DNA of 64,000 nt from assembly GCA_030704615.1 (NCBI GenBank), contig CM060733.1, forward strand, positions 48,608,001-48,672,000, in the 5' to 3' direction. Both the position numbers and the translations under genes were made by a program. Origin of the DNA: Takakia lepidozioides (taxonomy: Eukaryota > Plantae > Bryophyta). The notes under the pieces are model-generated. The model saw nothing but the letters and a program-made list of their open reading frames with translations. It made no database searches and was not told where the DNA came from. This document shows, in pieces, positions 8,959-64,000 of the stretch; position 1 is the first letter of the stretch; every line of letters begins with the position of its first letter.

Positions 8959-11605
8959 AACTTCTAGAAGGAGGGCTGAACTCCGGTAACACAAGACGAT
9001 GTCGGTCGACGTACTTATGGTGAAAATATTTTGAGGAAAGCCATTTCCCAAAATCACAATATTTTGACAAGGTTGGAGGGACCATTTTCAAATCTGTATT
9101 CTTCCGTTGTTCCGAAGGTTTTTATCAGCAGAAGATGGAAGAAGTCCCTGAAATGTTGTCTCGGGTATCGTGGATATGGTGATGACCTCAAAAAAAATAT
9201 CCTCCAATATTACGCCAACCAACAATGTCTTGTGCGACCGAAGTTTAGCTGTACTTCTCGAAGAATTGGTGGCCTTGCAGACTTTCAGTGAATCCCGAAG
9301 ATGATGAATTACTCGTATGCTCTTCAAAACATAATGTCCAAGTAATTGACCCTGGAGTAAGATGCTGAAAGTATCCAATTGGGGAGTAAGTATGCTGCTC
9401 GTATGCTTCTGGAGAGTGGCTCAGTGGCGAGTACGTTGATGGAGAGAGTGACGTTTTCTGCAAAATCTTCAAGGAAATAGTGTCGGGTGACCAGTCGAGG
9501 TTAATCTGTGATGGGCTGTGGTATTTCTGACGATTTACTGTAAAGCACTCGTAAACTGTTCTCCAACTAAATAATCTCCAACTGAATAACCACCAATGAA
9601 CTGATTGGAGCTATCACAACCAATGTCAACAATCTTATTTACTGCTAGGTGTTTGATACTATTGTTGTTCCTGTAGCTGAATTGTATAGTAGTCGTTTTG
9701 CTATTCCCATGCAAACAGTATCAGGTCTCCAGATACTGTCATATTCAGATTCCCGTATCAGCCACGACCCACCATCATTGACCAATATAAAATCATCAGC
9801 TGCATGTCAGCTGAGAACTCGATCTTCGATTCATTGTATGTGACTCCAGAGAAACACCCTAGCCCACAAGTAGTTGGCTAGCAGCTTGAGATATTTCTCC
9901 GGGCTGTGATTGAATGAACTGGAGATTTCATTCTTAGCTGATGGTTTCATGTAGGTGGTGTCTGATACCGATTTCGGAACATGACAGTCTCAATGGACCT
10001 GATGTTGTTGGAATGGGAATAGCAAAAAGACTCATATAGAAATCAGCTACATGAACATAGGCAGTATCAAACACCTTGAAGTACATATGATTGTTGAGAT
10101 GTTTGCACAGATTGTTTGCGACGGTGTTCTTCCTTCGTCCAATCCACATAAAAATGACGAGAATGGCCCTGGAGATTGACGTTAAATTGCTGACATTCTG
10201 CCTCATCGTAATACCATTTTGGTGTACAATGATGGACATCAGAACAGGTCAGCAAATAGAAAAACATGCGTGATCGCGCGATGTTAATCGTTGGTGTTCC
10301 TCAAAAGAATAATGAATCTCCAAACAAAGGATATAGGAACCAAAAAATACACCACGAGGATGCTGTCAATTGTTGGAGATCGGATTATGCAAGCAGGGAG
10401 AATAACTTCAAACAACTTAAAGACTAGGATTTTAAGATACTTGAACAATCCGCCAAGGAACAAGTGACACCATCAGCCCGGGAGTGCGTGTTAAGAAACA
10501 CATCAATGAGTCATCCAGGATGATGGTGTGAAATATTCCGGGACGGATTATGCAAATACCTTGAGTTCTCTCGCTGTAACTGACCTGAAGTAACTCACTA
10601 TGCCTGCAGAATCCTCACAGCTTCAAAAGACAGTATTTTCGTTGTTGATTGTGTGAGCATATAAAAAGCATCACTCCGACCAATGACAAGTGGCACTATT
10701 GAGGTAATATAATACTTAGGCAGTCGGCTGGAGAACCAGGACGATGATGAAGTCCGCTTTTCGAACCATGAGTGATCGCGCAACAGATCTCTGCCTCTAC
10801 CACCATTGAGAACCACAACGAGCCGAATGCATCCAGATTTCAATCAACCACGATGGTGTTGTCAGTTCGTTAGGGAAGGAATTTTGAAGCCGCCAAAATT
10901 ACTTCAATCCATTTGAAGAGAGGTTTTAACAAAGCTTCACAATCCGCTCAGGAACAAATGAGACGACCATCGTGGGTGCTTGAGTCATAGACGATGATTG
11001 TGTCACATGTTCCCCATCGTAATATGCAAACATCGGAAAATTCGTTCTCCTCCAACCTCCTCCAGCCTCCAGCCTCCAGCCTATTACCTCCACTGACAAT
11101 GAAGTCAACTTGTTTTGATAACATTTGATGGCACCGCTGATCCATGCTAGCTCCACAAGAGAAAGATATGAAAGAACCACGCGCGATCGCGCGTGGTTTC
11201 TCTCAAACTTCGATGACCAACATTAAGGCTGAGAGGATCTGGCATAACATTGACAGTTTTAAATAACGAATGTGTGTAATGATCAGGCCGGCCATAGTTT
11301 AATTCATCAATAACACAGAGTTGCTTCCCAAATGGCTCACACTCAAGGCATATGTTCGAGATCGCCGTCGGTTGCCACTGATAGCGGAACTTTGTGCAAC
11401 CGAGGAGATGGATACAGTCGGAGATTGATATAAGATATGACCAGACACCTCACTGGTAGCTGTACTTGATGACCTTGATGAACGTAAAGCCTCGCGGTCC
11501 CTCCGCTCAGTCTTTCGCTGCTGTTCTTATTTCTTCTCCTGTCGAATTTGATTCTGAACTTGACACTGGAATATAACTGTGTGGAGGCAGCACATAAATG
11601 AACTG
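8959..11605. repeat. Array of long imperfect inverted repeats (hairpins) with CGCGCGATCGCGCG-type palindromes
   Basis: Self-complementary arms at ~8959-9266, ~9600-10110, 10382-10614, ~10915-11050, and weaker ones at ~10683-10864 and ~11300-11605. Palindromes at 10267-10280 and 11175-11198. Confidence 0.7.
9245..9472 (-). pseudogene. Fragment of the YSPIGYF / CTD-like Ser-Pro-Tyr-rich ORF family
   Basis: SPSTYSPLSHSPEAY...YSPIGYFQHLTPGS aligns with YSPIGYFCDIPTG (50809-51132) and YSPI*YFSHLRSPGS (~50600-50640). Confidence 0.55.
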
Positions 11606-11857
11606 TTAAAGAAAATACAAAGATCATTGAAATATCATTGATCTCACAAAAGTCATGTGAAGTCAACATACGTATAGGTACAAATGATAAAACTGATGGA
11701 CTACACACAAAATATGACAAAGTTAAACTACATACCCAGATAATCGGGATCCTTTTGCGATGGGTGCCAAACAGAAACATCAATAAATCTCTAAAAAAAA
11801 CATCTTAATCGAATCATCCTAAAGAATGTATTCACTCCCAACTTTAAGAAAAACTAG

Positions 11858-12300
11858 GCTCTGATACCATTGTAACACCCAGGATCTACATAAACTAGCA
11901 TAGAAGTACTTCTCAACTTTTTCCCAAAACAACTCGATGCCTTCTAGGCTTTCATTGCAGGTTTATATACCCTTCACAATATGATTATTTTAAAGGTTTG
12001 ACTTGAGAGCCTCAAGTCAAAACTTCTTAATGTCAACATTCCTAGATTTGACATATTCTCCACAATACGACTTTATCAAAGATACTTGCTAAAGTCAACC
12101 TTCTTAGGTTTGACATATTCTCTACAATATGACTTTATCAAAGATTTGACCTACTCTCAGTAATATGAATATCTTAGAGGTTTGACTTGAGAGCCTCAAG
12201 TCAAACTTCCTTAAGCCTTAGAATCCTTCCTAATTATTCTGAAAACTTCTAGGGAACTTTCCTCCTCCATCTAGAACCTTCCAGATTCTACCTTGTTACA
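11858..12300 (-). mobile_element. Isolated 5' LTR (11871-12300) with tRNA-iMet PBS; internal region truncated
   Basis: TGTAACA...TGTTACA termini; PBS TGGTATCAGAGC on the minus strand at 11858-11869; internal duplicated TTTGACTTGAGAGCCTCAAGTCAAA hairpin units. Confidence 0.85.
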
Positions 12301-12509
12301 GTAATATGAGAACAATCAAAATTCGTTCGATGGGCCAATGAGGCGTTCATTTGTCATCTGGTTTTTGTTCATTGCGAAAAAAAAATCCTGCAATGCGTGC
12401 ACGGCTATTGCATCCATTGAACGGATGTGGTTCAAGCCCCTCTTTTGCCCGCATGTACTTGAACATGTGTGTGACACATATGCGGAGACACAACAGACGA
12501 ATAAATCAT

Positions 12510-14145
12510 TTACCTCCTCGTTCGTACAGCAACAAATGTCTCTCAATCGGTTCTCGATCATACAATTCGTTCTCCTCCGGCACCCATGGAACTTGTGGGA
12601 GCCGGATAAACCTGGACCTTTATCTGATTCCAATGGAGGTTGAGTTTTCCATGAGCAGTGAGTAGGTTTTGCCGAACAATGCCGAACTTAAGGGAATATT
12701 CATGGAATATTCTTCTGAACCAGTGTCCATCATATATGGATGAATATTCTATCAAGGAATATTCTTTCGAACCTGTGCCGAACCAGTTCGGACCACTTTC
12801 GAACCTATGGCACTGTTCGGTGCCGAACCTTCAATATTTGAGGGGTTATGTGCAATATAAATTTAGTAAAAATCTCATTTGAAATCCAAAATAGGAATAT
12901 TCTATAAACCGAACCTATCCCAAACCTGGAAGTGGTTCGGCAAATAGGTCCGGACGGTTCAGTGACGTTCGGCAAAACCTGCTCACTGCTCACTACTCAT
13001 GGATTTTTTAGCCCCCACTCCAATGCCTTCCCAGATTGCAGCAAAACTGCTCTCTCTCCCACCAATCGGGAATGCCTCCCGCATGTATGGTTATCTCCCA
13101 GTCAGATGTGACCCAGAAATACTGGGGATCTTTGACGTATGTCGGGTTTCTGGCATATATGCCATGCATCTCTCTGTCTTCATCCCATACCAAGTTCTTG
13201 CCCCAATGCACATAATTCATAAATGTGAATGGTAGCCCATCCAATGGGAGGTTGTGTCGATTGTATTCAAAACCTATGGGCATCCGATCTTCCAAGCCCC
13301 TCAGCTCATAAAAAATGGCTCGGGATAAGACATGTGAGATGGAACATATGTCCACATAATCCAAGCACATGACATCCCTCTGGGTCGTATGGATTCCTGC
13401 ACATCGAACAAACTGTACGATCTGATATCCATGATGGCAAAACGCGTCGTGGTATCTCCTCCCTCTGGGCCGGTTTGATGTGGCTGGTCATCCTTGTTGT
13501 GGTGTCATACTTTTCCTCTATCTCCAATTCCCAGTTTATGCTTCTGTTCGACCCTGAAATTCTGTGCTCACATCGATCGAAGATAGAATCCACATCTGCC
13601 CAGTTGGTATACTCGGCGAACACGTTTGATGCAATACAGAGATTATTATACCTTTGCATTTTGGCATAAATGCTATCCACGCTACGGTTCGACATGCGTG
13701 CGACACGATGCAAGCCTGACAGTGCCTACTCTACCCGTGCTTCTCTGGAGGCCAATTGGGTCGCCCATTGTACCCAATTCTCCCAATCGCCATTCAATAG
13801 GACCCATGCCCGAATCTCCAACGTTTTGGACAAGCGCCATGCGGTTGCCATGGCAATGTCCCGCTTCTTTGTAACGCGGTGGACATCTGATATCGGATTC
13901 ATCTCGGATTGAATGGCGACCCTCGAGCATTCCCCGGTTTCCAGTACTGGTTCTTTTCCTTTCCTCCTTTTCTCATCCGCAATTCGCTGTTCCTCAACCA
14001 TGGTTTTATCGGCCACAGGGTCCGTAATTTCGTGAATGATGAGGTCAATACTGCGATCGGGCATCGCAAACTTCCCATCCATGTCCACGACGTTTGTTCG
14101 ATCCTCATTGTGGACAACAGTGCCTTCATTGTTTGGAGGCATGTC
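12510..14145 (-). pseudogene. RING-finger protein gene, frameshifted, MITE-interrupted and 5'-truncated
   Basis: CSMC-x12-CGHMFHLTCL RING-H2-like pattern in ORF 13306-13713; overlapping ORFs 13726-14178 and 13008-13370 read as one frameshifted gene. Confidence 0.65.
12653..12998. mobile_element. MITE with TIRs and internal CCGAAC/GTTCGG repeats
   Basis: GAGCAGTGAG(T/C)AGGTTTTGCCGAAC inverted at both ends; flanks reconstitute TTCCATGGATT (AT or CATG duplication). Confidence 0.85.
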
Positions 14146-14324
14146 TGACAAATCTTCTGTAATAATTGGTTTGTCCAAGGAATCTCCTTAGACTCTTAAC
14201 ATTTACTGGTGGTGGAGAGGCTTTAATGGCCTCTGTCTTTCTATGATCCACAAGAAGTCCCCTCTTACACACAATGTGTCCCAAAAGCACCCCTGAGTTC
14301 ACACAGAAAGTACACTTCTCTGGG
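14146..14324 (-). mobile_element. About 180-bp Gypsy RT fragment, same family as the 28.6-41.3 kb element
   Basis: Near-identical to 35665-35839 (PEKCTFCVNSGVLLGH...LRRFLGQT.YYRRFV). Confidence 0.9.
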
Positions 14325-16235
14325 AGGTCATGACCTTGGTCCTTTGCGATGACGATGTTTGGGAGAAGTGGCAGGAGGTTTTCAGAGAGTGGGAGAAGGG
14401 AATCCTCCTGGACATTAATGGAATGAAGCACAAGGGTGTACGATCGCAGCTGACAAAATCTGCAGTCTGCAAACTGCAAGGATTGAACCCCCTCCAAATG
14501 AAGAAGGTTGCGCAAAAGATTTTGGACTTGAAGATCTGTGTTCGTAGTCCTTACAAGAGAAAAGACCCCAAGATTCTCTGTCTGTCCGATTACATCAATC
14601 GAATAAAGGGCAGACGGTTTATCATCGATGATGTCATGGTGGTATTGGGATTTGACGCCAGGAGCAAGCAGCATCCTCTGGAGCCGTACACAAAACACAA
14701 TAGCTCGAAGTGAAGAAAATATACAAGTTCAACAAGTCGGAGTTCGAGACATTCCGATCGAAACTGGGGGCCAAATACATGAAAAACAAAGTGAATACGA
14801 ATATGAAGACCTAGAAAGTGAGTGACGCTTTCATCAAATACGTGCTTTCATGCAAGAAAAGGGTCGAAGACATAGAGAAGGAAATGGACAACCTCAATGA
14901 TACCTTCAAGTCACATTACCAGTGCATGACTTAGTTGTTTTCATGCAAAGAAATTACAAGAATATTTTCGATGCGTTCTTCGAACAACAGCTGAGACCTA
15001 ATGCATTTGTCTTCTTCTCAACGCAGAGGTCCTCTCCCAATCTGGTTTCGTACATAAGGTTTGGCGAGCGTCGGAACAAGTATATTCTACTTCAGGGGTT
15101 GTATCTTCCTGGAGAGTTTGACAATCCTTACAAGAGCCGGCCAAAGTCATTTACAAGGCCATTCATGTGCCTTGATTACGTATTTCCTGCAACAGCTGCC
15201 CAGATTGAGAACCACGAGGAGCACCTGCAGGGAGTCTTGATGTTCAGCCCCATTAAACCAGTGATTAAGGCTCCGGACATTGAGCTCACAGAACATGAGA
15301 GAGAATGTGCCGCTTATGAACACGAATTGCGGGCAGAGTCGAGCGACTACATTGCGTCCTTATTCTGTGGCGAAGGAATGGCGGCTGTCAATCTCTTTGG
15401 AGGAGTAATGCTAACATCGGCTCTCCACGTAAGCACTTCCATTTCCCATTTCCTATTCGATTTCCTTTTCCATTTCCATTTCCGAAACACAACATTGGAA
15501 CCTTGTGCGATCACTCATTCATCATTTTTACTCACTGTTGGCATCTTTTTGCAGACTAGGAACGTCCAAGTCCTTGATATAAACCACAACCTGTAAAAGA
15601 AATTATGCGCGAATAAGATTGCCACAAATTTCACATTCCTCCACCCGGAGAATAAGGACGGAACCGAGGTTGGCGATGACACAGGGGGAGGGTAGGAGAC
15701 CCACAGGCACAATGACGAAAGAAATGACAATGACGAACAAAGAGATCTGGAGACAAACTAGGAAGAAAGTGACGGAAACGAAACGTTGGACAAAAATGAA
15801 GAACTTGAGGGAGGTGAGGAAGACAAAAGCGACTACCAACACGATGATGCCATCAACACCTTCTTGCAAGAAGAGATAAAACAAATTGAGCATGGCAGAA
15901 ATCCACCAGCTGAACAAGCAGGGAGGGTATTATCTGAAGAAAGCCACCATCCACAAGCCATGCCAAATACCGGTGAAGGAGACAATCCCGTGACTACTGT
16001 GCTGTCTTCCTCCATTGAAGAAGTGGGGGGAGACAATGTACAGGATAACGCTGATTCTAGGGACATCTTTGATAAGGAGATTTTAGAAATAGACTCAATG
16101 GTGGGATTCAGGCCTGTGGAGGGGGATATGCCATTACGGATATCACCATATCAAGGTTTAAGCCAACGAGTTAGAGACATCGTTGATGGTAGGCATCTAG
16201 GGCATTGGTCGGCGATAAAAATTGTATTGACGTGA
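14325..16235 (+). pseudogene. 5'-truncated spliced gene, possibly a degenerate DNA-methyltransferase-fold protein with an acidic tail
   Basis: Frameshift- and stop-linked ORFs 14330-14713, 14922-15596 and 15786-16235, with a GT-AG intron ~15429-15554. ELR...IASLFCGEGMAAVNLFGG...ALH|TRNVQVLD weakly resembles beta-MTase motifs X-I-II. Confidence 0.4.
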
Positions 16236-16414: not shown

Positions 16415-19400
16415 ATGGAGGAAGTGACACATACCAGAACAAACGACACACAACAGCGTACAATGAAGAAACAATACGACTTGAGAGTGAGGATATCGTT
16501 GCCCAAGATGGCAGTTTCAGAAACTGCGGGCGATCGTACGAGGTTACTTATGGGAGGGGTCGAGAAAAACATACCGGACGGCGAAAGACCCGTCGCCGGG
16601 GGAGATGGCGTCCAATCCTCATCCGGCTTGGAGCAAGTGTCGCCAAAGCTGGTACTTCATTCTCCGCCTTCTCTTTCCTTCCTGCTTTCTGGACATTGCG
16701 AAAAACATCCAATGAATTAATAATTATTTCTTAATGGGCAGGATGATATGATCTATCCACCACACGAGTTTTCCCAAGCTGTCAATCCCGGGGATTTCTT
16801 TGCTCTTCCAATGGGTCCAAATGGATGTCAGCCCGGATATTATGTCCCGGTTTTGGGTGTCGGGTTCCTATGTAAGGTCTACCTCCATAATGGGCCAAAA
16901 ACCCCTCCCGCAACGCAACCTTGTATCTCCGTTGGAAAATTTAAGTTAGCAATGCGACATGAGGTGGGAGACTTTCTCAAATGGGTCGTGCATAAGTTTT
17001 GGGTCATCTTATGGAACACTGGCAAAGAAGAGACTGTCGTGGATTTCAAATCAGCCTTGTTCGGGAGGAATGCCCACAAGGTCATGCATTACAGTTCCGA
17101 CCAATGTATGGAACATAGACTTACTTTCAACGCATATTGGCCTACGCTTCCTAAGGCCCCAATTTACTTCAAACGACTTTACGACTTGTTCGTAGACCCC
17201 GACTCTAAAGCCTACAGGTCTAACACCCTGCTTATAGACGTTGTTGGGAACATGTACAAGTCTTTCCTCAATCCTCTGAGCCTGATCATCTTCCTACCTA
17301 AATACGAAACACTTGTAGATGCATACAAAGATGATTTTTTGATGGGTTATCTGAAGCCCCACCTGGAGAAGTTGAGGCATTCAAAAATAGACACTTGGGC
17401 CTTCAATGAGCAGAACCCTTTTTGTATACCTAAGGATGTCTACTTTCAGGATGCTAGAGTGAAATTCACTAATCGCTGGGACTTTCCATGGCCTAAGAAC
17501 AAGGAGGAATGAGATGCACATCTAAAGTAGCTACAGGCCCTTGAATTAGAGCATGGAATATTAAAGTGACTAATTTTGAGAATGAACTGGGATTTGGAGG
17601 TCATTGAGTTCCTTATCTGGTCATGGGATTCTTCTTTTCTCCACTCTATTCAGCTTTGATTTACTTAAGTGTCTTTATCACTCCTTCACAGATCCGACAA
17701 CCTGGATCTCCACCTGCGATGGGACCCCGCTTGATAATTTTTGACGTTAATGGAGTGTTGTGCAATATAATGAAGCGCCAAAGCACAGGCCCTGCTCCAC
17801 GCTTTTTGGAATTTGATTACAGAATTCCTGCTATTGTTGGGTATCGGCAAATCTTTAGACGGGAGATGTACTGGGAAGTTTGGCAAGAGTTACACAAGCA
17901 CTTCATTTTAGGTATCTGGAGCTGCATGATGCTTAAAAACTTAAATGTCGTTCTGGATTTGCTCCTATGTGGTCTTCCACGGCCAGCGTTCATCATGTCG
18001 CAGGAGGATTGTATCATTTGCCCAAGCAATCTGCACCCAAATTACCGAACGGGACAAAAACAACCTCTTGTGTTCCTGAAACCACTTCTTAAAGTATGAC
18101 AGAGTTCTGAAGGATATTACAATCAGAGTAACACTCTGCTAATTGATGATACGGCTTTGAAGTGTTTGCTGAACCCTCCTGAATCATGTCTTCTTCTCAA
18201 GTCTTTTGAGAACATCGACGTCAACGATTTCTTCCTTCGCAAACTTAGAGATTTTTTGCTTGGCTTCTTGAAATTTGAAAACGTTTCGAGCTTCTTGAAA
18301 GCAAGGAGAATAGGTTTTCCACCTTTTAAAGTTAACGATCCACAGTTCAGGCCTCTTCTTGACTATATTGACAATTCACAATATCGTGATTTCCGAGTAA
18401 ATGATAAGTAAATATTCGCGACCTACTGTGGACACAATTTACTACTTAATATTGATTGTCAAGACCATGGAATTTCAGTCTTCTTCTGATATTCTTCTGC
18501 ATTGCATGGAAATTGTTATATTGCCAATCCATATGCAACGGTCAATGGATTCATTGTTCCTTTATGTCCGTCGATTTCTTTTCGGAACCACGCGCGATCA
18601 CGCGTTCTTCCAACTCAAATTTATTGCTTTGTTGACATATATTTCATTTGCAGGTATGCCCATATATTCTCCACGCCACAAATGCATCTCCAAGTGGCGA
18701 AACATGTTCGTCTAATATTGTTGACGATGTAGAAATGATCAGGCCAAAAGCTTTCCAAGGACCTGACAACTTGTTGTCTAATCATGCATCCATTGCTGTT
18801 ATGGAGCGTGATCCCATCAGTGTTTCAGATGTAGTTTTGAGGCTCAAAATGTCAAAAGGTGAATCCACCGTTAGCAGGGTCGATGATTTAACTGGGGTTG
18901 GCTGTGCATAGTGGAAAGCGACTCTCAATATCTTGGGGAATCCTCTTTGGAGCCGTCCTTATCTCAACACTTTCCACCAGACGCCATCATGGGGCATCTA
19001 CATGAGTCTACCAAACAACACGTTCCATTGGTTGCAACTGTTGCTGAACTGCCTCCTCATCATGTCGTAATTCCAAGCGTGTCACCGGATCACGAGGGCT
19101 GGACACCTCACCTGCTGATAAGTCAGGTGATTTAATTCTATTTTATCCATGCGTTTTATTGTTACCGTGTTTCTGTTCATCCTCCGATTTTCTTTCTTTA
19201 CTCCAGGCCAGAAAAGCTGCAATGTATGACCTTCATGTGAAGCGGCAACTTCTGTGGGGTTGTATTCCAAGGTAATCATTTTTTTCCGTTTGAATTCGGT
19301 TCAAGATGTGCAGAAAGAAAGAAACCAAATTCCTTTGTCAACCGTCAGCGAGAAGGTTATTGAACTCATTCATTCGCCGACTGAGGTCAGCACACCGACA

Positions 19401-20040
19401 AGACCTGCAAATATTTCTGCACATCCCCAACCCCCCAGAATTCTGGATGGTCCCGTGTCAAGGAAATGTCTCAGATCACAGCAATCAGCGGCGGTCATCT
19501 CCGACGATGAAATAACAACATCTGTCTTCCGAAAATTATGAAACAATTTTGTTTCATATGGTCTGCCGAACATTGCACAGATACAGCTGGACATATTAAT
19601 CCTGGAATGAAATATCTTATTAAAGATATTAAGAGTATTCTCGTAAAATTTAATGGGAAAAAATTTGCTAGGCAGGGGCAAATTCTACTGGTCGATGATG
19701 ACCCATCCAAGGCACTCCGAAACCCAGTGAATACTGGAGCCTTCCCAATCACATTCAAGGAATCAAGTAATGAGAAGGATTTGGTTGACATCACCAAAGC
19801 ATTGTGGCCTTTTCTCTTGGGCTTGATGGAATGTTGAATAATTAGTAGTGATGGTGCGCCATAACGATAGTATAAAAAATTTATTGACTTAAATCAACCC
19901 CCTTTCCGTGATTTTCCTTCGGAGTGTGAGTTTAAAATGATATGTCATCGTAAAGCAGAAATTAGAGATATGATAGTACAGAGATTTGGAGAGGAACAAT
20001 ATCAAGAAGTGTTACAAAACCCACGACCTGTCGTCTTTCC
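16415..20040 (+). pseudogene. Multi-exon gene with three FCP1/SCP (NIF)-like HAD phosphatase domains
   Basis: In-frame phase-0 intron 16652-16741, plus introns ~17600-17690 and 18397-18653. Domain 2: IFDVNGVL...IWS...SQEDC...FLKPL...NTLLIDD..K...NP. Domain 1: NTLLIDV...K...NP. Domain 3, C-terminal half only: WSAEHC...LLVDDDPSKALRNP. Stops fit CGA/CAG/TGG mutation. Confidence 0.75.
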
Positions 20041-20181: not shown

Positions 20182-20183
<2 letters not shown>

Positions 20184-20247: not shown

Positions 20248-20249
<2 letters not shown>

Positions 20250-24123: not shown

Positions 24124-26761
24124 TCATGGTGGTGGTGGATAGGTTTAGTAAAATGGGCCATTTCATCCCCACCAAGGAGACGACAACGCGCAAGAGACGG
24201 GGCGACTTTACTTCGTCCACGTCTTCAAGCATCATGGACTCCCGAAGGATAATGTCTCGGACCGCGATCCAAAGTTTACGAGTAAATTTTGGAGGGCACT
24301 TTGGAAGAAGATGGGGACGAGGCTCAAGATGAGCACCGCCTTCCGACCTACGACGAGGGTGAATTCCGTGGTGAAGCAGATCTTGCGGAATTACGTGTCG
24401 GCAGATCAATCGGACTTGGTGGAGCATTTGGATGCGGCAGAGTTCTGTTATAATAACACAAAACACTCCGCAACGGGAGTTTCCCCTTTCGTATTGGTCT
24501 ATGGAAAAGCACCTCTGGTGCCGACAAGTTGGGCCGCCCAAGACGTTGAGGAACTGGCAGCAGCAGCGGTGCTGGAAGAACGCGAGCGTTTGTTGAAGCT
24601 CGCAAAGTACAACATTGCCAAAGCTAGGAAACAGTATGAACAGCAGACGAATCGGAAGCGGAGGGAAGTTAAGTTTGAGGCAGGCACGGAGGTCTGGTTG
24701 AACATCAAGAATTTCCGACTACCTCCGGAAGTGAGTCCGAAGTTCGTATCTCCGTATGCGGGATCCTTTCGCATCCGGAAAGTTATGAATGAGGATGTGT
24801 ATGAATTGGAACTGCCGGCAAACAGCAAGGTGCATCCGGTATTCCACGTCTCCCTTTTGAAGCCTTACTTCAAAGATGAAGCGCGTCCGAATCGGCATCA
24901 AGTGTTGCGTCCGCCACCTGTGCTTTTGGATCATGAAAATGAACCTGAGTACGAGGTGGAGGCAGTGCTTAAGTCGAGGAGGTTCAAGAATCGAGAAACG
25001 GAGTATCTCGTGAAATGGAAGGGCTATCATCATGTGGAGGCATCTTGGGTGCGTGCCTCAGAAATGGGAAACGCATCCGAGGCGGTTGCAGCTTTCGAAG
25101 GGCGACCTCAAAAGCGGAAGAAACGTTGATGGGGACATCAACCTTGGATCGTGGGGGAGGAAATGCATGCTTAGTCCGGCTTAGCTAACTCAGGAATCCG
25201 ATTGCAAAAACTTGTATTGTACAAATTTTGTTATAAATGAAATGGTTTCCAAATGTTGTGCGTCCTATTTTGTTTGGAATGGTGATGCATGGTATGGTTG
25301 GCTAGTGTGTAGAATGCATGTTAGCTTACAAAAGTGGGAGAGGTAAATTGGATTAATCGTGTGTTTGCGTAGTGCCGAAATCGGGTGACTCCCATCCAAG
25401 GGGCAAGGAAACTTGTGCCTTCCTTGGGAGTTCACGTGCTAGTGCGCACCTGACGCGTGTGCATACTATAACTGCGCTACCGAGGGGGTTGCCTTGTAGT
25501 GCGGGCTAACGCAGAAGCTACGTGCTTCCGTTCACGTACTATAATCGTGTAGCCTCGGGACGAAATCGTAGTGCGGCTTCGGCATGTTCCCGTACCTCAA
25601 GCCAACATTCCAAGGCGGACCCAATTGTAGTGATTGGGGCGCATGGTTAGTCCAAGGTTATCTTCCTAGTAAAAAAGGGTTCAAGGTGAACCCTTACTTA
25701 AGGTGATGCCAAAAGTGACATCATGAGCGGTCGCAAGTAATGTTGTTGCAGTAAGGCGATTCAATCCTTGGGGAGGATCGTTCCTTGACCTTGAAGTAGG
25801 CCAAGAAGAGTGCACTGGGAGGAGCTTGAGAGGCTCCACCCTTGGCCGGGACTTGGAGGAAGTCGGCCGAACTAGCTAGTGGAGAGTAGAGTCAAGTGTG
25901 GGGTTTGGTTCTTTGCCATGGGACGCCATGGTACGGAAACAAACTCCTTGATGTGGGACGCCACAACTTGGATGTTCGTTTCTACAAAATGGACAAGTCG
26001 ATGAGGACATCGACTCCCTGTTGGTAAGGGTGTGTGTCGCGGCCCTTTGCCTTGAGGGCAGGGGGGTCGGGACGCAGGAGGGGCTGCCCCTGTGGTGGGG
26101 GCAGTGGCAGCAATAGGTACGGGGGGCTGAAGCACCCTTGAGTGCCCAAGGCACTCAAGGAGGTGGAGGCGCTCACTAGGTGGAGCCCCGCACACCGGGT
26201 TGCGGTGGGGGTGGCTCCACAAGGGGTGGAGGTAGCTTAGTGGGACTTAGTGGGGGTGGCATAGGACTCACCATGGGCCGGAGACCTTGTGGTGGGAGTC
26301 GTGGGGAGTCTTGGGACTCACCACGGTCCAATGGGGCCGTGGTGGGTGGGCCAAGACTCACCGCGACTCATCACTGGGAATCGAGGGTCTTCGTGGTGGT
26401 TCGCCATAAATGGCATGGTTGTTTGTGAAACCCCCGCGGACAGTCACAGAAGTATATATAGGGAGTAGTAACCCCGAGAATGGTGCAAGCCCGTTGGTGA
26501 CCAAAAAACTAGTGAGTAAGCGAGTGAGCCGGAAAGCGACCAAGGAGTGGGGAGCTATTCCGGACTGCCATCTACCAAAGGGAATTTCCACTAGGTCCAA
26601 ATTGGTGGAGGGTCTGGTGGAAGAGTAAAGGGGGACCGTTATGTCCCGGTGAGCAGCCGAAGCTTCAAGTTGGCCCGGCGGCCAGGTTGGGAGTTAGGCA
26701 CGTGCATCAAAGCGAGTAACTATGACTTGAAGGGGAGCTTTCCGAAGTGAGATGCGCGACA
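24124..26761 (+). mobile_element. 3' part of chromoviral Gypsy family B: integrase-chromodomain, 3' UTR, 3' LTR (26035-26761)
   Basis: Near-identical to 46047-48693; HPVFHVSLLK and chromodomain EYEVEAVL...YLVKWKGY...SW; LTR TGTCGCGG...GCGCGACA. Confidence 0.95.
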
Positions 26762-31972: not shown

Positions 31973-31974
31973 CG

Positions 31975-49609: not shown

Positions 49610-51132
49610 CCTAAAACTGAGATGAAGGACTATATCATGGTGATTCAGTACACCCCCTATGAATTTCTTGAAAACTTCTCGGGTACCCTGAAAGTTATCC
49701 TACCGATTATTGTGGGTATTCAGTGGAACCACATGGAGATACTGAACTGGTGGAAGTATACTCCGGTGTGCCCGTGCAGAATCTTTCCATTTCTGATGAA
49801 TCCGAATGGTCGGAACTTACAGTTGACGTATGTGTGTATTGTACCAAAAATGAGGCCAATTGTCGCGGCCCTTTGCCTTGAGGGCAGGGGGTCGGGACAC
49901 AAGAGGGGCTGCCCCTGTGGTGGGGGCAGTGGCAGCGATAGGTATGGGGGGCTGAAGCACCCTTGAGTGCCCAAAGCACTCAAGGAGGCGGAGGCGCTCA
50001 CTAGGTGGAACCCTGCACACCGGGTTGCGGTGGGGGTGGCTCCACAAGGGGTGGTGGTAGCTTAGCGGGACTTAAGGGGGTGGCATAGGACTCACCCTGG
50101 GGCGGAGACCTCGTGGTGGGAGTCGTGGGGAGTCTTGGGACTCATCACGGTTCATAGGGGCCGTGGAGGGTGGGCCAAGACTCACCGCGACTCATCACCG
50201 GGAGTCGAGGGTGTTCGTGGTGGTTCGCCATAAAATGACATGGTTGTTTGTGAAACCCCCGCGGACAGCTACAGAAGTATATATAGGGGAGTAGTAACCC
50301 CGACAACGGTGCAAGCCCGTTGGTGACCAAAAACTAGTGAGTAAGCGAGCGAGCCGGAAAGCGACCAAAGAGTGGGGAGCTGTTCCGGACTGCCAACTAC
50401 CAAAGGGAATTCCACTGGTTCCAAATCGTTGGAGGGTTCTTTGGGAGATCAAAGGGGGACCGTTATGCCTCGGTGAGAAGCCGGAGTTCCAAGTTGGCCC
50501 GGCGGCCAGGTTGGGAGTTAGGCGCACGCATCAAGCGAGTAACTATGACTTGAGGGGGGAGCTTACCGAAGTGAGGTGCACGACACCAATGCAGCCGACC
50601 CGGGTGATCGGAGGTGGCTAAAGTATCATATTGGTGAGTACTCTGGGGATCCGAGAGTATACCCTGGCGATAAGGGTGTATACTTTGGCGATGAGGGAGT
50701 GTACTCTGGGGATACGGGAGTATACTCCGGAGATTCGGGTGTATACTCTGGGGAATCCGGTGTATACGCAAGGTACATAGCGCAGAAATCATTTGATTCC
50801 GCCGATACTTAAGATACATGATCTCCGAAAGACCCTCCACAGTATTGTTCTGGAAAAGAACTTAAAGCTGCTAACCCGGTAGGAATGTCGCAAAAATATC
50901 CTATTGGTGAATAATTGTCCTGATCGTCTGATTCAGGAGAATAGCTGTCAGGCTCCTCTGTGGATAGAATTGTAGAAACTGGAGATGATCGATCATAAAC
51001 TTGAAGTCCTTCGGAAGGTCTCGTCATAATAACCGCAGCTCCGCATTCACCTTGTGAGGAGGGTGAAAGCGTTGCCTTGTGACCAGTATGTTCCATCTCC
51101 TTCTCCTTCTTCATCAAACACGAATCCACCAC
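49610..51132 (-). pseudogene. RNA Pol II CTD-like heptad-repeat protein, interrupted by a solo LTR
   Basis: 50641-50766 on minus translates to [42 protein letters not shown], then YSPI*YF. It is in frame with ORF 50809-51132 across one TAA, and with ...AAL|ASFLVQY once the solo LTR is removed. Confidence 0.75.
49861..50585 (+). mobile_element. Solo LTR of family B
   Basis: TGTCGCGG...GCACGACA, flanked by TSD CCAAT; no PBS or PPT. Confidence 0.97.
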
Positions 51133-51189: not shown

Positions 51190-51585
51190 TGAAGAACGCG
51201 CGATCGCACGTATTTGGTCCACAGTTTTCCCTCCACTAACGTAAAATCCGATTTCAAGCAACAACGAGGTTGCTAAGCATGGCGAACAGATCCCTATCCA
51301 TGACTCTGCCAGACCTGTGGATCGATACTCGGCTAGTATTGTATTGTCTTGTGGTCCACACTGAATACCTCCTCCCATCATACATAAGAGTGACCATGTC
51401 AGCAGCACATCCAAGAATTATCATATTATATGTGCATGACAAGACTGATAAAGTGCGTCGTAAGGTTTTACTTGACATTGTATGATATGAACTAATGTCT
51501 TGCGAATCACTTTACAGTTTTGAGGATGCACTCATAGGTGTCCTCATCTATGTCTAGCTAATCATCTGGGTATCAATAGTAATGT
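51190..51585. repeat. Palindrome plus degenerate hairpin unit, paralogous to 63550-63990
   Basis: CGCGCGATCGCACG at 51197-51210; 51345-51580 aligns with 63715-63947. Confidence 0.8.
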
Positions 51586-52534
51586 GAGGTAGCCTATACT
51601 ATATGCGCACACAAATGCATGCATATGGAGGAATGTATGCGTGCATACAAATTTTAGATATGCATAGGAACAATTTTATATGCACAACACTTAAATAAGG
51701 GTACCCAAAAAAAAATAAAAAATTGTGATTCATCTAATCTTAGGGTCCATAGTCAAAATATCAAAGGATGGAATAAGAATATTCTATATAGAATATTCCA
51801 TATTCATTGTATTATTATTCCACATGGGTGAGTGTAGGAATGGGAGAGGAACATGTTGCTTTTATGGCTTTCCAACATGAAAAAAGGTCGAAAAATTAAA
51901 AAGTGACGAGGCACGGCTCCTTGTTAGATACAAATGGTGAAGGTACGGGCTCTTCCAATGGTGGGAGTCTAGTTTGAAGTTCAGAATGGAGCAATGCTAA
52001 GGGAATGCTAGGGAGCTTGACAATGCTAGGGAGCTTGTTACATAGGTTTTGCAGTATCTATATATCTATCTTCTGAAACATTTTTATTTTACAAAAACAT
52101 AATGTCCATCAGAGATAGAACCCACAACCTATCGGGTATCAAGCCTAGTTCATACCACTACACTACCCATTCAGACTTGAAACACTAATGAAATGAAACA
52201 CTAATGAGATAAAGATAGTCACCCTGTGTGTACATAACATGCCACAATACTCATAAGGGTTGATCTTACTAATGATGAAATTTGATAGTGCTGAAGTGCA
52301 TGTCGAACTTGCATTAAGGTAAAGGGATCTATGAAATGCAGTAGAGATCTATGTACAAACTATTACATAGATAAATCAAATGACAGGAAGATAACATGAA
52401 ATCTGATTTCAACACCATGTCATTTGCCCCATTTGTTTTACCTTACACTAGAGAGAAATACATGTATCATAAAAATAACAAAAAATTCGGACTGACAATG
52501 AGGACAATGTATTGTATATGTAATTTCTAATTAC

Positions 52535-56869: not shown

Positions 56870-57985
56870 AGAGGACCTCCGACCACCTACGCCGGCGCAT
56901 ATGACACATATGTGCAACCAACTCAAAATTTGACAAGATTTGAGGCCCTGAAGAAATTTTTGCTCAAGGAGCTCCAAGCATATGCGCCGGCGCATACCAT
57001 GGAAGGGAGGTTGTAGCCAAACATACAGGAGCACCTTGAAAGATCAAACTAGGCCTATGGAAGCATGTGGAGTTGTGGAGGTGGCAACGTAGAAGCTTTG
57101 AGATACTTGAATACTGTGATCAACCAAAATAGGGAAGGTTCCCCAAGCGTCTGCGCCGACGGAGGTGGCAGCCTCGACACTTTGGAGCTTACGTAACACA
57201 AGGAATATACAACAAAAAACCAAGCTCCAAGCATCTCCGCCGGCGGAGATGCTTGCATGAGGTTCCTGAAACCTAGGAGCTAAGCAAAAAAGATTGTGCT
57301 CAATGGGTATGCGCCGGCGGATATGGCAGCCCAGCCGCTCGGAGCATCAACAACTTATGAGAATGCGGAGAAACAAAAGAGATGGAAGGGGGGAGAACTT
57401 CCTGAAATATGTGAGCAGCCCTGCTGCACGGGTCTGTGTTGACAGAGGTGGCAGCCTTGGCGCTTTGGAGCTTCCGTAACACAGGGAATATGCAAAAAAA
57501 ACCAAGCTCCAAGTGTCTCCGCCGGTGGAGACGCTTGCAGGAGGTTCCTGAAACCTATGATCTGAGCAAAAAAAATGTACTCAATGGGTATGCGCCGGCG
57601 GATATGCCAGCGCAGCCCACTCGGAGCATCAACATGCGGAAAAACAAAGAAGATGGAAAAGGGGAGAACTTCCTGAAACATTTGAGCAGCCCTGCTGCAC
57701 AGGTATGCGCCGGCGGAATACGCCAGCCCAACCCGCTCGGAGCATCAGCAACGTATGAGCATGCAAAAAAATAAACGGGATGGGAGTAGAGGAGCACTTC
57801 CTGAAACATGCGAGCATCCCAGCTCCAACGGTATGCGCCGGCGGAGGTGGCAGCCCAGCCCTTCCAAGCATCAGAAAAAACCAAGGGGAATGAGCTGTCT
57901 CCGGCGGAGACGGTTGTGTGTATGTGGAGATTCGCAAACTTGTGAGAGTTGAAGTGACTTAGGCATCTGCGCCGGCGGAGGTGCT
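56870..57985. repeat. Tandem repeat (~140/280-bp units) with about 11 CGCCGGCG-type palindromes
   Basis: 57220-57500 is repeated at 57500-57780; TGCGCCGGCGGA recurs at e.g. 57310, 57591, 57706, 57834 and 57968. Confidence 0.85.
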
Positions 57986-59192: not shown

Positions 59193-61760
59193 ATGTCTAC
59201 ACCAAAATATGCAGTGCTTTCATGTCCACCTGATGCAAAAGTGGTTCGTTATCCTTGCAATGGAAACAAGTGCATTATCCCAGAACCTTGGTTATGCAAT
59301 AGATTCAAACTTGTTCCGGGTTCAGTTTTTTTGGAGGATGATGGAGATGATGATGCCTCCACAGTGTTGCTTCCAGTTTTCAATGACGGCCAAAAGCAAT
59401 GGGAGTTGTTTCCAGACACTTTCTCCAAGTACCGTGTCACAGGTACGAGCTATACACAGTCACATGATGAGAGGCACACTTCTATTGCAAGAAAGAACGA
59501 TCAAGCTGCAACAAATGGGAGTTGTAAATTGAAGGAGGAGGTTGCAGATTCGGCGAGCTTGGGGTCTCATAATTCGGATTGTGTTGAGGTTTCTAAGAGT
59601 GTATTTTGTGGATCTCAACCTTCCTCATCTGCTCATACGGTCTTGCTTCACGACATGAAGCCTCGGAAAACTCCATTGGACAACACCACGTCTGATTGTT
59701 GCGAATCTGCGAGGGGTTTATCTTCATCTCCACGACTAGCAGGGGAGGCTACATCTGCATTTCCTTCTGGTGTGTTGTCCATTTTGAGTATCTTGGCCAC
59801 TGCTCGGAGGAATGGATCAAAAGGAGAGCTTTCTACCTTGGACTATAGTCACATTCCAGTGCATCGTGTTTGGTGTCTTCCTCGAGCTTTGATGGAAAAA
59901 GTGATCCACGAACTCCCCCCCGTGGTCAAACTACGTACGGACCGTGGTTCACAGTCCCTCCAAGGCATGGACCGCAAGTTTGATGGTCATCCTTGGTGCA
60001 AGACCAATACCTACAATATGTCTGGTGTTCCAGATCATGTGAAATGTAGTAAGGTTCTTTGTGTTGGAAAGCTCATATGTCAAAGCAGCACTTGCCCCTT
60101 CTTCAAGAAAGAAGGAGAACGGAATGACCGCTATTGGGAAGGCAATGCAGACAAGGTGTTCATTGCAGAGCCCAAGTTCCATTCAACCAGTTCAAGTGTA
60201 GTTTCTGCAAAGAAAGACCTTTCTGTGAGGCGCATTGTGGGGCAAGAATGTACTATGTCACAAGTTCCCTTCCAACATACACGTGTTGCAGTTCACGTTG
60301 GGTTTCATAACCATCCATGTGCCAAGGGCGAGAATAGAGAGGCTGCGAAAATGCATCAAGCATGATTCAAGAGCACGTTAAGATGAAGCCATGGTCGACC
60401 CGGGAGCTATTTCCTTGTCAATGGCCCAAAAGCTCTTGATTGATCGAGTTCTTGTGGCTGATGGCACAGAGACAGTACGTCTTGGGAGAGGCTTTGGAAG
60501 ATATTCTTGAAGAGTTTGCCCATGTTTGTAGCCCCAATGTGAAAAACAAGGTCGCATCTGCACGTGTCAATTCCATCATGTCCATATTGGAGTTGAAGCG
60601 TCTGAGTACATACCATTTCATTCACAGCAATCTCCTTCCAGGCCAGCATATTTCTCATCTCCCCATGTTTTCAAGATGTCTGTTGCTGGTCCCGGGGTGT
60701 GGTGTTGATCTTGTGCGTCGCATGAGTGAGGGGGATCTACGCACAAGTTGGGTAGTATTTGACCATGTCAAACGCATCAAGGATTGGACAACTCTTGCGT
60801 GTCATGTCTATGAACCATATGTCAAGCGAATGATGACCATTGCCATTTGCGATATGAAAAAAGAGGATGCAGATGCTCAGGTGTTATTCTGGGAGATGAT
60901 CAATGAACAAGCAAAACTTGCTGGCTTGAACAAACCAAATTTTGCTGGCTTCATGGCGGATGCAGCAGGAGCGAATTGGGCTGCTGTTCGAAGGGTTTAT
61001 GGATCTGATCCCAATGTCCAATGGAAGGTAAAGAAAGAACATGTTTATATCATTGGGCTGAAAGCCTCCGAAGACACACCAACGACTATATCTTGGAGGA
61101 CTTCCGTGAAAGGCACACTCAGCTCTGTTATGAATGGAAAGATAGTGCTACCTTGGAGGATGCTACAACCACATACATTGCAATTCGGGCTTGGTGGCTC
61201 TCTTCAGGAGCATGCACAGAAAAGAGTCTGCCAAAACTAGATTCATGGCTTGCATGGTGGCACTACAGATATCGAATGTGGGGCCAATGGATGAGAGAGG
61301 ACATGGATGTGGAGGCAGATGCAGATATGCCTACCACTAATTTGTCTGAGGCAGTCTATTCTGCTTGGTGGAAGACAGCAGGCAATGGGAAAAAAATGAA
61401 GGTGGATCTATATGAGGCCACCATGCATGACATGTCACGAGCTCTTTTGCAGCAGGCAACATTTTACAGGCACACCACAGGAAAGACATGGGGGACGGGG
61501 CCCGACAAAGAGGAGCTCATGTTGCGTCAAGCAGCTAGATCTAATAGCCCAGCAAAAATGGGTAAGGTTGTACGTGGCATAGTAGCTGGAACACCCATGC
61601 ACACAAGGGGGGTTCAATTGGAGGGAGACAATCGCACTATTCCAGTCAAACGCAAGTTAGGCGATGAGCATGGTGGGCCAAACGAATCTTGGAGGTGTGA
61701 TATGAATGTAAAGACTGTTCCAGTGCGCGCCACTGGGATGCCCAGTCCACACCAGCAGTT
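59193..61760 (+). CDS. MULE-type DDE transposase with N-terminal WRKY/GCM-like Zn finger (frameshifted)
   Basis: CVGKLICQSSTC...HVGFHNHPC; catalytic D (VVFDH), D (FMADAAG), CxxH (CLYHW) and E (TTNLSEA) across ORFs 59193-60365, 60440-61240 and 61021-61830. Confidence 0.85.
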
Positions 61761-62040
61761 TCATATTAACCAAAATATGGACTTTTGTACTAACAAATGC
61801 ATATGTGTCATGTTTGGAACCACCACATAGCATGTCTGTTTGTAATGCCAAGCAGTTCTATAATTTGAAAACTTGTATGACAGGTACACAAGTTCCATTT
61901 TAACCAAAATAGGAACTTCTGTACTAACAAGTGCTATGTGTCATGTTTGGAATAAAGTAGTAACAAGATAATTACATGTCACATGCATGAAAATGAACGG
62001 CACAAGTTAGAGGTTCTTTTTTTGTGCATTTCATGTGTCA

Positions 62041-63015
62041 CTAAGAAGTTGAACTAGGGTCCTTCTTTAGCATAGCCCTAACCTCTAACTGGCTAAGGGA
62101 AGGTTGGTGGATCTCATAAGCCCCGGCGCATCCTAGATGCACGTTGTACATGAAGTACATGTGCTTACAAGGTAGATATGTTTGTTTTTTCTTCTTGACG
62201 GATAGCTCATCAAAGTCGGGACAATCACAAGATGGAAATTGACCAATGTATACATTGTAAGCCAATCCTGCTCTGGTAGATCCCTCTGTTTGTAGCTGGT
62301 AAATTCTCCCATAACCTGGCTGAGGCACGTTTCTGAATCCACGAACCTCAGCAATAAGAGTCTCCGCTGACTCTTGGCGACTCAAGTCGAGGAGTCGGAT
62401 CCCGACGCCGAATGCGCACCCCATAGCGTGTAGTGGGATACTTACCCACAGGAAGGACAACACCTTGATGAATATGTTGTTCCACTGGAAGTGGTCCCAC
62501 AGGAAAGTTCGGATCAGGAACGTTGGGAGGATGGACTAGTCGAAAACCTGCAAGGGTCAAGTTGTCCACCTCTTCTTGTGTAAGGTTGGTTCCAACCTTC
62601 ACAGGCCACACGTTAGGTATACCCGGTTTTCCCAAGCAATAGGATGGCACGGTCCCTCCAACACACGACAAAACATCTGTGGGGCAAAACCAAAAAACTT
62701 GCAGTTTTGGTTCTTTCATGTTCGGTGCTAGTAACTTGCCAGTGAAGCAAGGTGCAGGACTTCCTTTACCTTTCCTGATGAGCGCTTTGCATTTATCTTT
62801 GGAAACTTCAACCAAGGCAGAACAACGAACCATGGAAGCAGGACCTGTCCGCTGAATCCTGAACAATGCATCGGAAAAGTCTTGTGTCTCTCTCACTGGA
62901 TTTCCCCATTGCATTGGCTGAGGAGGGATAGCAACATGTGGATTTGTCTCACAGAAAGTCGAAGAACTAGGAATGTCATGACTTGATTTGGCCAGGGATC
63001 TTGTATTCTCTTCAG
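62041..63015 (-). CDS. SWIM zinc-finger module, likely the transposase C-terminus in inverted orientation
   Basis: YNVYIGQFPSCDCPDF...LPCKH (CxC-xn-CxH); ORFs 62348-62914 and 62041-62463 are linked by a frameshift. Confidence 0.8.
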
Positions 63016-63293
63016 TTTAAGGTGGTGCATTAGTTGGAGTTAGTGGTCACATGCATCTTTGACCATTGACTACTGATTTTGTTAGCTAATATTTTTTATT
63101 TTATTTTTTTTCTATATACATATGATGTAACATTTGCATATGCAATAAATACGTCGTATTCTATGTTATATAACTCCACTGCATACAATCTACAATGTGT
63201 GCATACAAATTTGTCACATGCATATATAATAAGGGATTTTGTGCATGCATGCACGCAACCTGTGCATATGGAATAGCAACCCCCTAGTGATGT

Positions 63294-64000
63294 TGTTGGA
63301 CCCACAAATAGAAGAACCAAACGAAGCACAGGCAATCGCGCGTGCTTCTTCCATCGATTATTTCACATATCCATTCTCCTTCCATTCTTCCCTAAATAAT
63401 CTCATAAATTAAACGACACAATCGATGACCAGCCTAATCGATGTTGACGACAAGTAATATTACTAACTATTGTGGGAAGTCAGAAAGTGGTTAAACATTT
63501 GGGATTTTGTCACTTCACTTTGTAGTGGCCTCATTAATGTAGGAACAGAAACACGCGCGATTGCGTGATTTTCATCTGTTTCTATAACATCCATATTCTA
63601 ATGGAATATATGTAAAGAATGCACAATCATTTTGATAACTTCCACTTGTTTTTGATAAAAAAAAAGTGGTAAAGCTAGAGCAAATAAATAATAACTTACT
63701 TAGTGTGCAAGACTAGTCTTGTGATCCACCCTGAGCACCTCCTCCAATCATACATAAGATTGACCATGCCACCACATACAGGAACTATCATATTCTGTGT
63801 GCATAGCAAGACTGATAAAGTGCGACGCAAGATTTTAGTTGACATTGTCTGATGAGAACTAATGTATTGCCTATCACTTTACAATTTTGAGGATGCACTA
63901 TGAGATGTCCTCATATGTGTTTAGCTAATCATCTGGGTATCAAGAGTGTTGATGATGGTCCCACGAATAGAAATACCAAATGAAGCACGCGCGATCGCGC
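63294..64000. repeat. Hairpin/palindrome array continuing past the window end
   Basis: Palindromes at 63323-63348, 63554-63567 and 63988-64000; hairpins at ~63355-63510 and ~63700-63943. Confidence 0.75.

Follow-up and report, generated by a model that had tools for sequence, protein, structure and literature searches.

The long terminal repeats (LTRs) of Sireviruses, which belong to the Ty1/copia group, contain hairpin-forming, CpG-rich palindromes known as repeated-motif (RM) boxes, which old copies retain (PMC2829016, PMC4728375), and conserved palindromes are found at the junctions of short tandem arrays in satellites and in elements of the Helitron and miniature inverted-repeat transposable element (MITE) types, as in the case of DTC84/pearl and phBglII400 (PMC3879986, PMC5139131). 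HIP1, a cyanobacterial octamer, is hyper-abundant genome-wide (PMC4390886). Here, we describe P1, a 26-bp CpG-rich palindrome that recurs in a 64,000-nucleotide stretch of DNA from the bryophyte Takakia lepidozioides (GenBank assembly GCA_030704615.1, contig CM060733.1, positions 48,608,001 to 48,672,000 of the forward strand), which we call the window and to which all coordinates refer. An earlier note had taken this palindrome for a processing signal, protein-binding site, or recombination site that delimits hairpin cassettes in a polycistronic array. We favor, with a probability of about 0.55, a reading in which P1 would be a cis-element with dyad symmetry and a probable protein-binding role in a transposon- or satellite-like family of non-coding repeats. 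This family, with units of 0.2 to 0.5 kb, would be old and low in copy number and would by now be silenced and decaying.

The P1 palindrome and its copies

The consensus of P1, GAA-N-CA-CGCGCGATCGCGCG-TG-N-TTC, is symmetric through its center, CGATCG, which is flanked by CGCG. With up to two mismatches, CGCGCGATCGCGCG was found five times in the window, compared to 0.02 matches expected from shuffled sequences, and the 10-mer CGCGATCGCG, with at most one mismatch, was found six times (0.27 expected), adding the site at 63990. The sites at 10769 and 63329, with four and three core mismatches, respectively, were recognized on visual inspection, and a profile search of the window with nhmmer yielded a single further candidate, decayed and weak (15498-15523; E = 0.14), for a total of eight sites and one decayed candidate. 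Chance or low complexity as the origin of P1 is ruled out by the shuffles. All eight positions listed in the earlier note, including the weak copy at 10769 and the one at 63988, which is cut by the window end, were correct, as was the perfect 24-bp palindrome at 11175-11198. The extension of the arms to GAAGCAC...GTGCTTC is exact at 63323-63348 and present as its left half at 63982; the other copies carry variants, such as GAACCA..TGGTTT. The copies and the 56-bp block found upstream of two of them are as follows:

10261-10286, unstranded: P1 copy with the core TGCGTGATCGCGCG and two CpG transitions
10763-10788, unstranded: weak P1 copy with the core TGAGTGATCGCGCA and four deviations, three of them CpG transitions
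11174-11199, unstranded: P1 copy with an intact core, containing the perfect 24-bp palindrome
15498-15523, unstranded: candidate decayed P1, GAACCTTGTGCGATCACTCATTCATC, in which four of the five core changes are CpG transitions; weak in the profile search
18585-18610, unstranded: solitary P1 copy with one core CpG transition, between tandem NIF-like paralogues, putative pseudogenes
51191-51216, unstranded: P1 copy heading unit B1, with one core CpG transition
63323-63348, unstranded: P1 copy with the exact extended arms and the core CAGGCAATCGCGCG, which has three deviations
63548-63573, unstranded: P1 copy heading unit B2, with arms reaching ~20 bp, TAGGAACAGAAACA.../...TGTTTCTA
63982-64000, unstranded: P1 copy cut by the window end, with the left arm and 13 core bases intact
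63286-63341, plus strand: 56-bp block entering P1 from the left, TGTTGNTGGNCCCACRAATAGAA...GAAGCA, 80% identical to 63945-64000
63945-64000, plus strand: second copy of the 56-bp upstream block, 80% identical to 63286-63341

The palindrome has a direction, with the left arm, GAANCA, being better preserved than the right arm, one flank conserved, and the other variable. The 56-bp block, weaker versions of which lie to the left of 11180 and 10267, also gives the element a direction, and, judged by the left arm and this common upstream block, all copies share the same orientation. Each of the eight half-site matches obtained with up to two mismatches lies inside a full palindrome, with no orphan half-site in the 64 kb. 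The GC-rich stem of P1 has a 4-nt loop and a T-rich tail, and P1 folds only into this short stem of its own, the exception being 63554, with arms of ~20 bp; a long hairpin centered on P1 was rejected as a candidate structure, as only 63554 and, weakly, 11180 extend past 26 bp. Over the eight P1 sequences, the arms pair at 74.0%, compared to 73.8% in column shuffles; thus, structure-driven covariation of the arms is not shown, and selection for a hairpin on the arms finds no support. Among the roles that had been proposed for the palindrome, protein binding appears to be the most plausible, given the dyad symmetry of the 26-mer and the lack of both orphan half-sites and extra arm covariation. 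The central octamer, GCGATCGC, occurs five times in the window, with three of the occurrences falling within P1 and the other two, at 28441 (in a kinase-like pseudogene) and 47661 (inside a retroelement), probably arising by chance.

The mutations in P1 follow a consistent pattern. In the 14-base core, 13 deviations were counted over 111 positions and, in line with the earlier observation that most deviations are CpG transitions, 11 of them are of this kind; altogether, 13 of the 47 CpG sites have been lost. The observed/expected ratio of CpG in the window is 0.63 and that of GpC is 0.92, which fits a CG-methylated genome. The P1 copies form isolated CpG clusters, with CpG-poor flanks that are close to the background (ratio of ~0.62) and hold no CpG islands. 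Across all copies, the mean pairwise identity of the 14-mer core is 75%, compared to 24-30%, the random level, for ungapped flanks at matched offsets. Between recent paralogous units, in contrast, the 26-mer is 65-73% identical and the unit bodies are 72-84% identical, with the changes in the palindrome being CpG transitions. Because the 26-mer is no better preserved than the bodies, P1 appears to have been unconstrained since the duplication of these units, and the conservation of the core across the family but not between paralogues suggests that it was inherited from the source elements rather than maintained by selection on the copies in place. Decay through CpG transitions, together with a palindrome that diverges as much as the bodies or more, points to silenced, neutrally decaying repeats and speaks against the proposal that P1 is an active processing or recombination site.

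Units between the copies and their hairpins

The intervals between P1 copies, which are spaced 225-500 bp apart with three copies per array, include the following units:

10281-10768, plus strand: unit A1, with a body (10351-10470 and 10507-10556) homologous to A2 (72-74%) and a local hairpin at 10450-10546
10783-11179, plus strand: unit A2, a paralogue of A1, with a local hairpin at ~10951-11013 (z of -1.5)
51211-51583, plus strand: unit B1, with a 235-bp island (51346-51580) that is 84% identical to B2 and a hairpin of ~100 nt at 51432-51531 (z of -4.8)
63343-63553, plus strand: unit C, between two P1 copies, with a fold z of +0.2 and no second copy in the window
63568-63987, plus strand: unit B2, a paralogue of B1, with a hairpin at 63799-63898 (z of -3.3)

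A1 and A2 are tandem paralogues in the head-to-tail arrangement, and A1 holds an inverted partial duplication (10382-10481 and 10515-10614). A2 and B1 match at 22 of 28 positions at a similar offset after P1, which suggests one ancient family. At 63329-63988, the layout is P1-X-P1-Y-P1, in which X (unit C) is unrelated to Y (unit B2). The description of the intervals as unrelated sequences therefore holds for the unique unit C but not for A1 and A2 or for B1 and B2. The units were ruled out as coding sequences: no coding signal was detected in B1 and B2, where the substitutions are spread evenly over the codon positions (10/14/12) and stop codons interrupt every frame. Another candidate that was rejected is the interpretation of B1 and B2 as the LTRs of a 12.4-kb element, considering that the interior open reading frames (ORFs) are in mixed orientation, with no gag-pol, and the similarity is patchy.

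Hairpins of ~100 nt lie 180-245 nt past P1 in four units, with z values, relative to shuffles, of -3.45 in A1, -1.5 in A2, -4.8 in B1, and -3.3 in B2, so that those of A1, B1, and B2 are significant and that of A2 is marginal. These four units, out of approximately seven flanking intervals, constitute two paralogous pairs. No better folding than in shuffled sequences was obtained for unit C, for the sequence on either side of 18591, or for that to the left of 51197 (z of +0.2 to -0.7). The hairpins are kept between paralogues with a few compatible or compensatory changes, a weak signal with two sequences per unit type: most of the B1/B2 substitutions fall outside the predicted stems, and the local hairpin of A1 and A2 includes three compensatory pairs, although this pattern is biased by the structure-predicting method itself. 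No match to the Rfam covariance models, among them those for miRNAs, snoRNAs, snRNAs, and hammerhead ribozymes, was obtained at the gathering threshold over the whole window, and only two chance-level matches appeared around the P1 copies at E values up to 5; a search for tRNAs with ARAGORN found none.

Foldbacks were mapped across the window by a BLAST-based inverted-repeat scan. The one beside 10267 (9623-10100; 478 bp) belongs to a separate repeat, which recurs at 26816-27177, and others lie far from P1, including 27250-27808 and palindromes within LTRs. Given these foldbacks away from P1 and the lack of a hairpin in unit C, at 18591, and to the left of 51197, the association between the motif and hairpins is partial. 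Thus, the statement that each copy lies beside a hairpin of different sequence is only partly true, as the hairpins in A1, A2, B1, and B2 represent two paralogous pairs and the other flanks have no significant one. In the reading that we favor, each internal hairpin is a property of its own unit body rather than a cassette delimited by P1. With a hairpin in only four of about seven intervals, these being two paralogous pairs, and no known small-RNA or ribozyme family, the polycistronic layout of hairpin cassettes did not hold up, and the cassette reading as a whole is only partly supported.

The imperfect foldbacks are 340-560 bp long, with arms that are 65-73% identical; those at 9623-10100 and 26816-27177 form one MITE-like or foldback family, and the 559-bp one at 27250-27808 is separate. 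In a MITE-like element of 341 bp (12652-12992), the terminal inverted repeats span 26 bp and are 96% complementary.

Age and origin of the P1 family

The DNA of the window is nuclear, eukaryotic, and rich in transposons of plant types. A Ty3/gypsy chromovirus is represented twice (~20.8-26.8 kb and 41.9-50.6 kb), with integrase SH3 domains and chromodomains and with LTRs that are 93-100% identical, and is accompanied by a 12-kb Athila/Tat-like LTR element with near-identical LTRs at 28590 and 40392 and by Copia fragments at 5.0-6.7 kb. The map of LTRs and ORFs over the window places no P1 copy inside an LTR retroelement, in agreement with what had been reported. The lack of P1 in young LTR elements (LTR pairs 93-100% identical) suggests that the P1 family predates them and, accordingly, it would reside in older plant nuclear DNA that was later invaded by young LTR retrotransposons.

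Beyond the window, P1 at up to three mismatches was absent from ~210 kb of related eukaryotic loci, including two liverwort genome loci and five loci of the neighboring transposase-like family in other organisms. The possibility that P1 is a subterminal repeat of the neighboring transposase-like gene was dismissed, as there is no inverted partner and P1 is absent at the loci of that family elsewhere. The P1 24-mer had no matches in a metagenome collection, the 18-mer was found in 120 metagenome contigs with one match each, mostly of high GC content (median of 0.67), and the 16-mer occurred in viral contigs only as single chance copies. An exact-string literature search for P1 retrieved no description apart from the unrelated cyanobacterial HIP1 octamer.

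The following scenario could account for the P1 family. During its spread, the 26-bp dyad site and ~30 bp on one side would have been required in cis, most likely as a site for a dimeric DNA-binding protein (a transposase, recombination factor, or transcription factor), and this requirement would have preserved P1 while the bodies diverged or were exchanged. The units then multiplied locally by tandem duplication, which is directly apparent from the paralogues, and would also have dispersed over tens of kilobases, with one of the internal hairpins probably arising via an inverted partial duplication. Finally, as the mutation pattern suggests, the copies would have been silenced and CG-methylated and, from then on, would have decayed neutrally, mainly by CpG deamination. 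The arrays have the features of tandem repeats or satellites with a conserved box, namely, tandem A1 and A2 at 72% identity, B1 and B2 at 84%, and a core at 75% vs 24-30% for the flanks.

Several observations weigh against this scenario. The copy at 11180 is a perfect 24-bp palindrome with six intact CpGs in an array whose bodies have diverged by ~28%, which is unexpected under pure neutral decay and could reflect protection, conversion, or a younger origin. The spacing shared by the A and B units (P1, 180-245 nt, hairpin) could reflect a functional module, and the outer variable position of the arms changes symmetrically in three copies (C/G, G/C, and A/T), albeit not significantly. No terminal-inverted-repeat partner was detected for the P1 units by self-BLAST, nor was a target-site duplication, CTRR end, or LTR pair seen, so that no transposon class fits, and none of the ORFs in the window encodes a transposase clearly tied to the units. 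Moreover, the analysis of P1 covers one 64-kb window of this genome.

The least unlikely of the alternatives is that P1 is a cis-regulatory or boundary element of the host, a dimeric transcription-factor or insulator site for separate small hairpin RNA genes, in modules consisting of P1, ~180-245 nt, a hairpin of ~100 nt, and 90-220 nt to the next P1. The dyad symmetry fits a dimeric binder, the otherwise unrelated A and B units share this architecture and spacing, and three of the four units have hairpins with z values of -3.3 to -4.8, along with B1/B2 substitutions mainly off the stems and three compensatory pairs in A1/A2; against this stand the intervals with no significant hairpin (unit C, 18591, and the left of 51197), the decay pattern indicative of methylated, unconstrained copies, the lack of an Rfam family, and the absence of P1 from the ~210 kb of related loci, including the two liverwort genomes. 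A plant small nuclear RNA upstream element, suggested by TCCCAC in the 56-bp block, was rejected as well, with 23 matches vs 28.5 expected and none at P1 copies. It also seems improbable that lineage-specific modular hairpin-RNA loci, organized as P1, ~200 nt, a hairpin of ~100 nt, ~150 nt, and the next P1, have P1 in common as a control or boundary element, which might serve as a promoter or terminator box or as a hotspot of recombination by which modules are shuffled and duplicated. The weaker version of the cassette idea, with one control box common to otherwise separate hairpin-RNA modules, spans the low likelihoods of these two proposals. The original version, with P1 as an RNA processing signal or a site-specific recombination site (of the lox/FRT/attC type) delimiting the cassettes of one long array, is less credible still. 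The P1-X-P1-Y-P1 layout with unrelated X and Y at 63329-63988 agrees with it, and the palindrome might fold into a stem as RNA or DNA, but the copies are spread over 54 kb, with genes, pseudogenes, and transposons between them, making a single transcript implausible. Recombinase sites normally carry an asymmetric spacer. P1, in contrast, is fully symmetric, no recombinase or integrase other than those of the retroelements was found in the ORFs scanned, the arms covary no more than shuffles, and the copies are decaying.

Transposon termini offer another set of explanations. If P1 and the block on one side of it corresponded to the 3' subterminal hairpin of Helitron-like rolling-circle terminators, the arrays could result from terminator bypass or head-to-tail insertion. 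The GC-rich stem with its 4-nt loop and T-rich tail, the one-sided conservation, the tandem ends with unrelated bodies (C, then B2), and the minus-strand conserved block that ends at CTAG for 63329 and 11180 are all compatible with such an origin, which we nevertheless regard as doubtful, because the distance from the hairpin to CTAG is 27-44 nt rather than ~10-15 nt, CTAG is missing at the other copies, and the bases beside the candidate CTAG are G or C instead of T. Furthermore, the 20 nt to the left and right of each P1 copy contain no CTRR, no Rep/helicase, Helitron, or PIF1-type domain was identified in the ORFs scanned, and P1, unlike Helitron ends, is palindromic throughout and bordered symmetrically by A-rich and T-rich sequence. 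The most improbable proposal is that P1 represents the abutting ends of independent MITEs, with each terminal inverted repeat supplying one half of the palindrome, which would be complete where two elements meet. It would explain why the ends are shared while the bodies differ, and other MITE-like elements are present in the window (9623-10100 and 12652-12992), but there is no orphan half-site in the 64 kb, both solitary copies (18591 and 51197) comprise the complete palindrome, and no target-site duplications are visible. According to the earlier note, its own reading would be overturned if P1 were simply the terminus of a widespread MITE or Helitron; in this literal form, neither end was recovered, with no CTRR terminus, terminal-inverted-repeat partner, or half-site at P1.

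If P1 belongs to a decaying repeat family, as we favor, it would be another conserved dyad-symmetric box in repeat or transposon DNA, useful as a diagnostic for annotating an uncharacterized repeat family and as a modest archive of how CpG sites decay in nature. Modular hairpin-RNA loci, if they exist, would instead give a bryophyte genome a cassette-like route by which new genes for hairpin small RNAs arise. If the intact copies turned out to lack methylation and to be bound by protein, or if the A and B hairpins yielded small RNAs, P1 would mark such a modular system and matter more.

Genomic context and comparison with known systems

Palindromes of other kinds are frequent in the window. 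A 76-bp imperfect palindrome is present in every chromovirus LTR (26296-26369, 42211-42284, 48229-48302, and 50120-50193), suggesting that LTR-borne palindromes are common in this genome. P2, a second family of CpG-rich palindromes with the core GCGCCGGCG, occupies 11 sites in 56889-57978, in tandem units of ~283 bp, and includes perfect palindromes of 28 bp (57228-57255) and 16 bp (56981-56996); its core is constant, and its arms differ yet stay symmetric. P3, a third palindrome-bearing tandem array (11993-12209), lies within the region 11978-12214, 0.8 kb to the right of the first P1 array, where two 53-bp direct repeats, each with the 33-bp near-palindrome GTTTGACTTGAGAGCCTCAAGTCAAAC, are set in 36- and 62-bp tandem repeats. 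Overall, the window holds 12 perfect palindromes of at least 14 bp vs 4.0 expected and, together with P2 and P3, this excess indicates that repeat-borne palindromes are a general feature of this DNA. In addition, a perfect 22-bp AT-rich palindrome (GAATATTCTATATAGAATATTC; 51777-51798) is nested within an imperfect one of 54 bp, 0.6 kb to the right of the P1 copy at 51197. Minisatellites of the GGCTGTG type, with repeats of 9-10 bp and higher-order repeats of 28-101 bp, are located at 29223-29477, 33880-34042, and 41025-41173, inside the Athila/Tat-like element, both in its LTRs and between them; these LTRs are 99-100% identical, pointing to a young insertion.

The region around the solitary P1 copy at 18591 (16748-19837) contains three tandem degenerate paralogues of NIF/FCP1-like phosphatases, with weak matches to PF03031 (E of ~0.007-0.009); in the second one, the catalytic DxDxT motif is apparently altered (FDVNGVL), and the three are probably pseudogenes or transposon-carried genes. 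On the minus strand, a protein-kinase-like pseudogene fragment (27890-28440), with the catalytic-loop-like sequence HNDLSPDNILL, ends beside an GCGATCGC octamer that superficially resembles P1, and a tRNA-like segment at ~52105-52180, with D-arm- and T-arm-like portions but no call by ARAGORN, may be the remnant of a tRNA-derived short interspersed nuclear element. A set of transposase-like ORFs on the plus strand (59193-61830) has no Pfam family. For the ORF at 60440-61240, an exhaustive protein search retrieved 442 relatives, of which the only named ones are those of two liverworts, Riccia sorocarpa and Calypogeia fissa, and which are twice found near DUF7869 genes. The motifs of the ORF set look like those of DDE transposases of the Mutator type that bear an N-terminal zinc finger. 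The adjacent minus-strand ORF at 62041-62914 contains a SWIM zinc finger (PF04434). The closest relatives of the reverse transcriptases, at 70-76% identity, originate from metagenome contigs. The origin of the intron-poor orphan ORFs from an endogenous giant virus was considered and rejected, as the relatives of the tested ORF are ordinary eukaryotic loci resembling transposable elements and there were zero PHROG matches.

Among the described systems, HIP1 shares with P1 an identical octamer, GCGATCGC, but the window is eukaryotic, with LTR retrotransposons, and contains this octamer just five times, so that the resemblance is coincidental. The likeness to the 3' subterminal hairpin of Helitrons consists of the GC-rich stem, short loop, one-sided conservation, and tandem termini, whereas P1 differs in lacking a properly spaced CTRR, an A/T insertion site, and a Rep/Hel gene. 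Similar to the RM boxes of Sireviruses, P1 is short, GC- and CpG-rich, dyad-symmetric, and repeated in plant non-coding DNA, although with only three copies per array, near predicted hairpins, with a preserved core and varying arms and with persistence in old copies. The RM boxes, however, have a CGG-CCG core, are spaced tens of base pairs apart, and form CpG islands in the upstream half of the LTR, beside the TATA box, in contrast to P1, which is centered on CGATCG, is spaced 225-500 bp apart, and has CpG-poor flanks and no enclosing LTR pair. The description of RM boxes better fits the P2 array (56889-57978), which is CpG-rich, closely spaced, and CCGG-centered, albeit with no LTR partner in the window. 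DTC84/pearl and phBglII400 are molluscan and embedded in defined modules of the MITE or Helitron type, whereas no flanking modules were recognized at P1 and the bodies differ between arrays; like P1, they comprise a few tandem units of a few hundred base pairs, with a palindrome near the unit boundary, a dispersed distribution, and abrupt transitions. Judging from the sequence comparisons, P1 lacks the distinguishing features of RM boxes, Helitron ends, and MITE terminal inverted repeats and, in kind, appears to resemble the RM boxes and the junction palindromes of tandem arrays.

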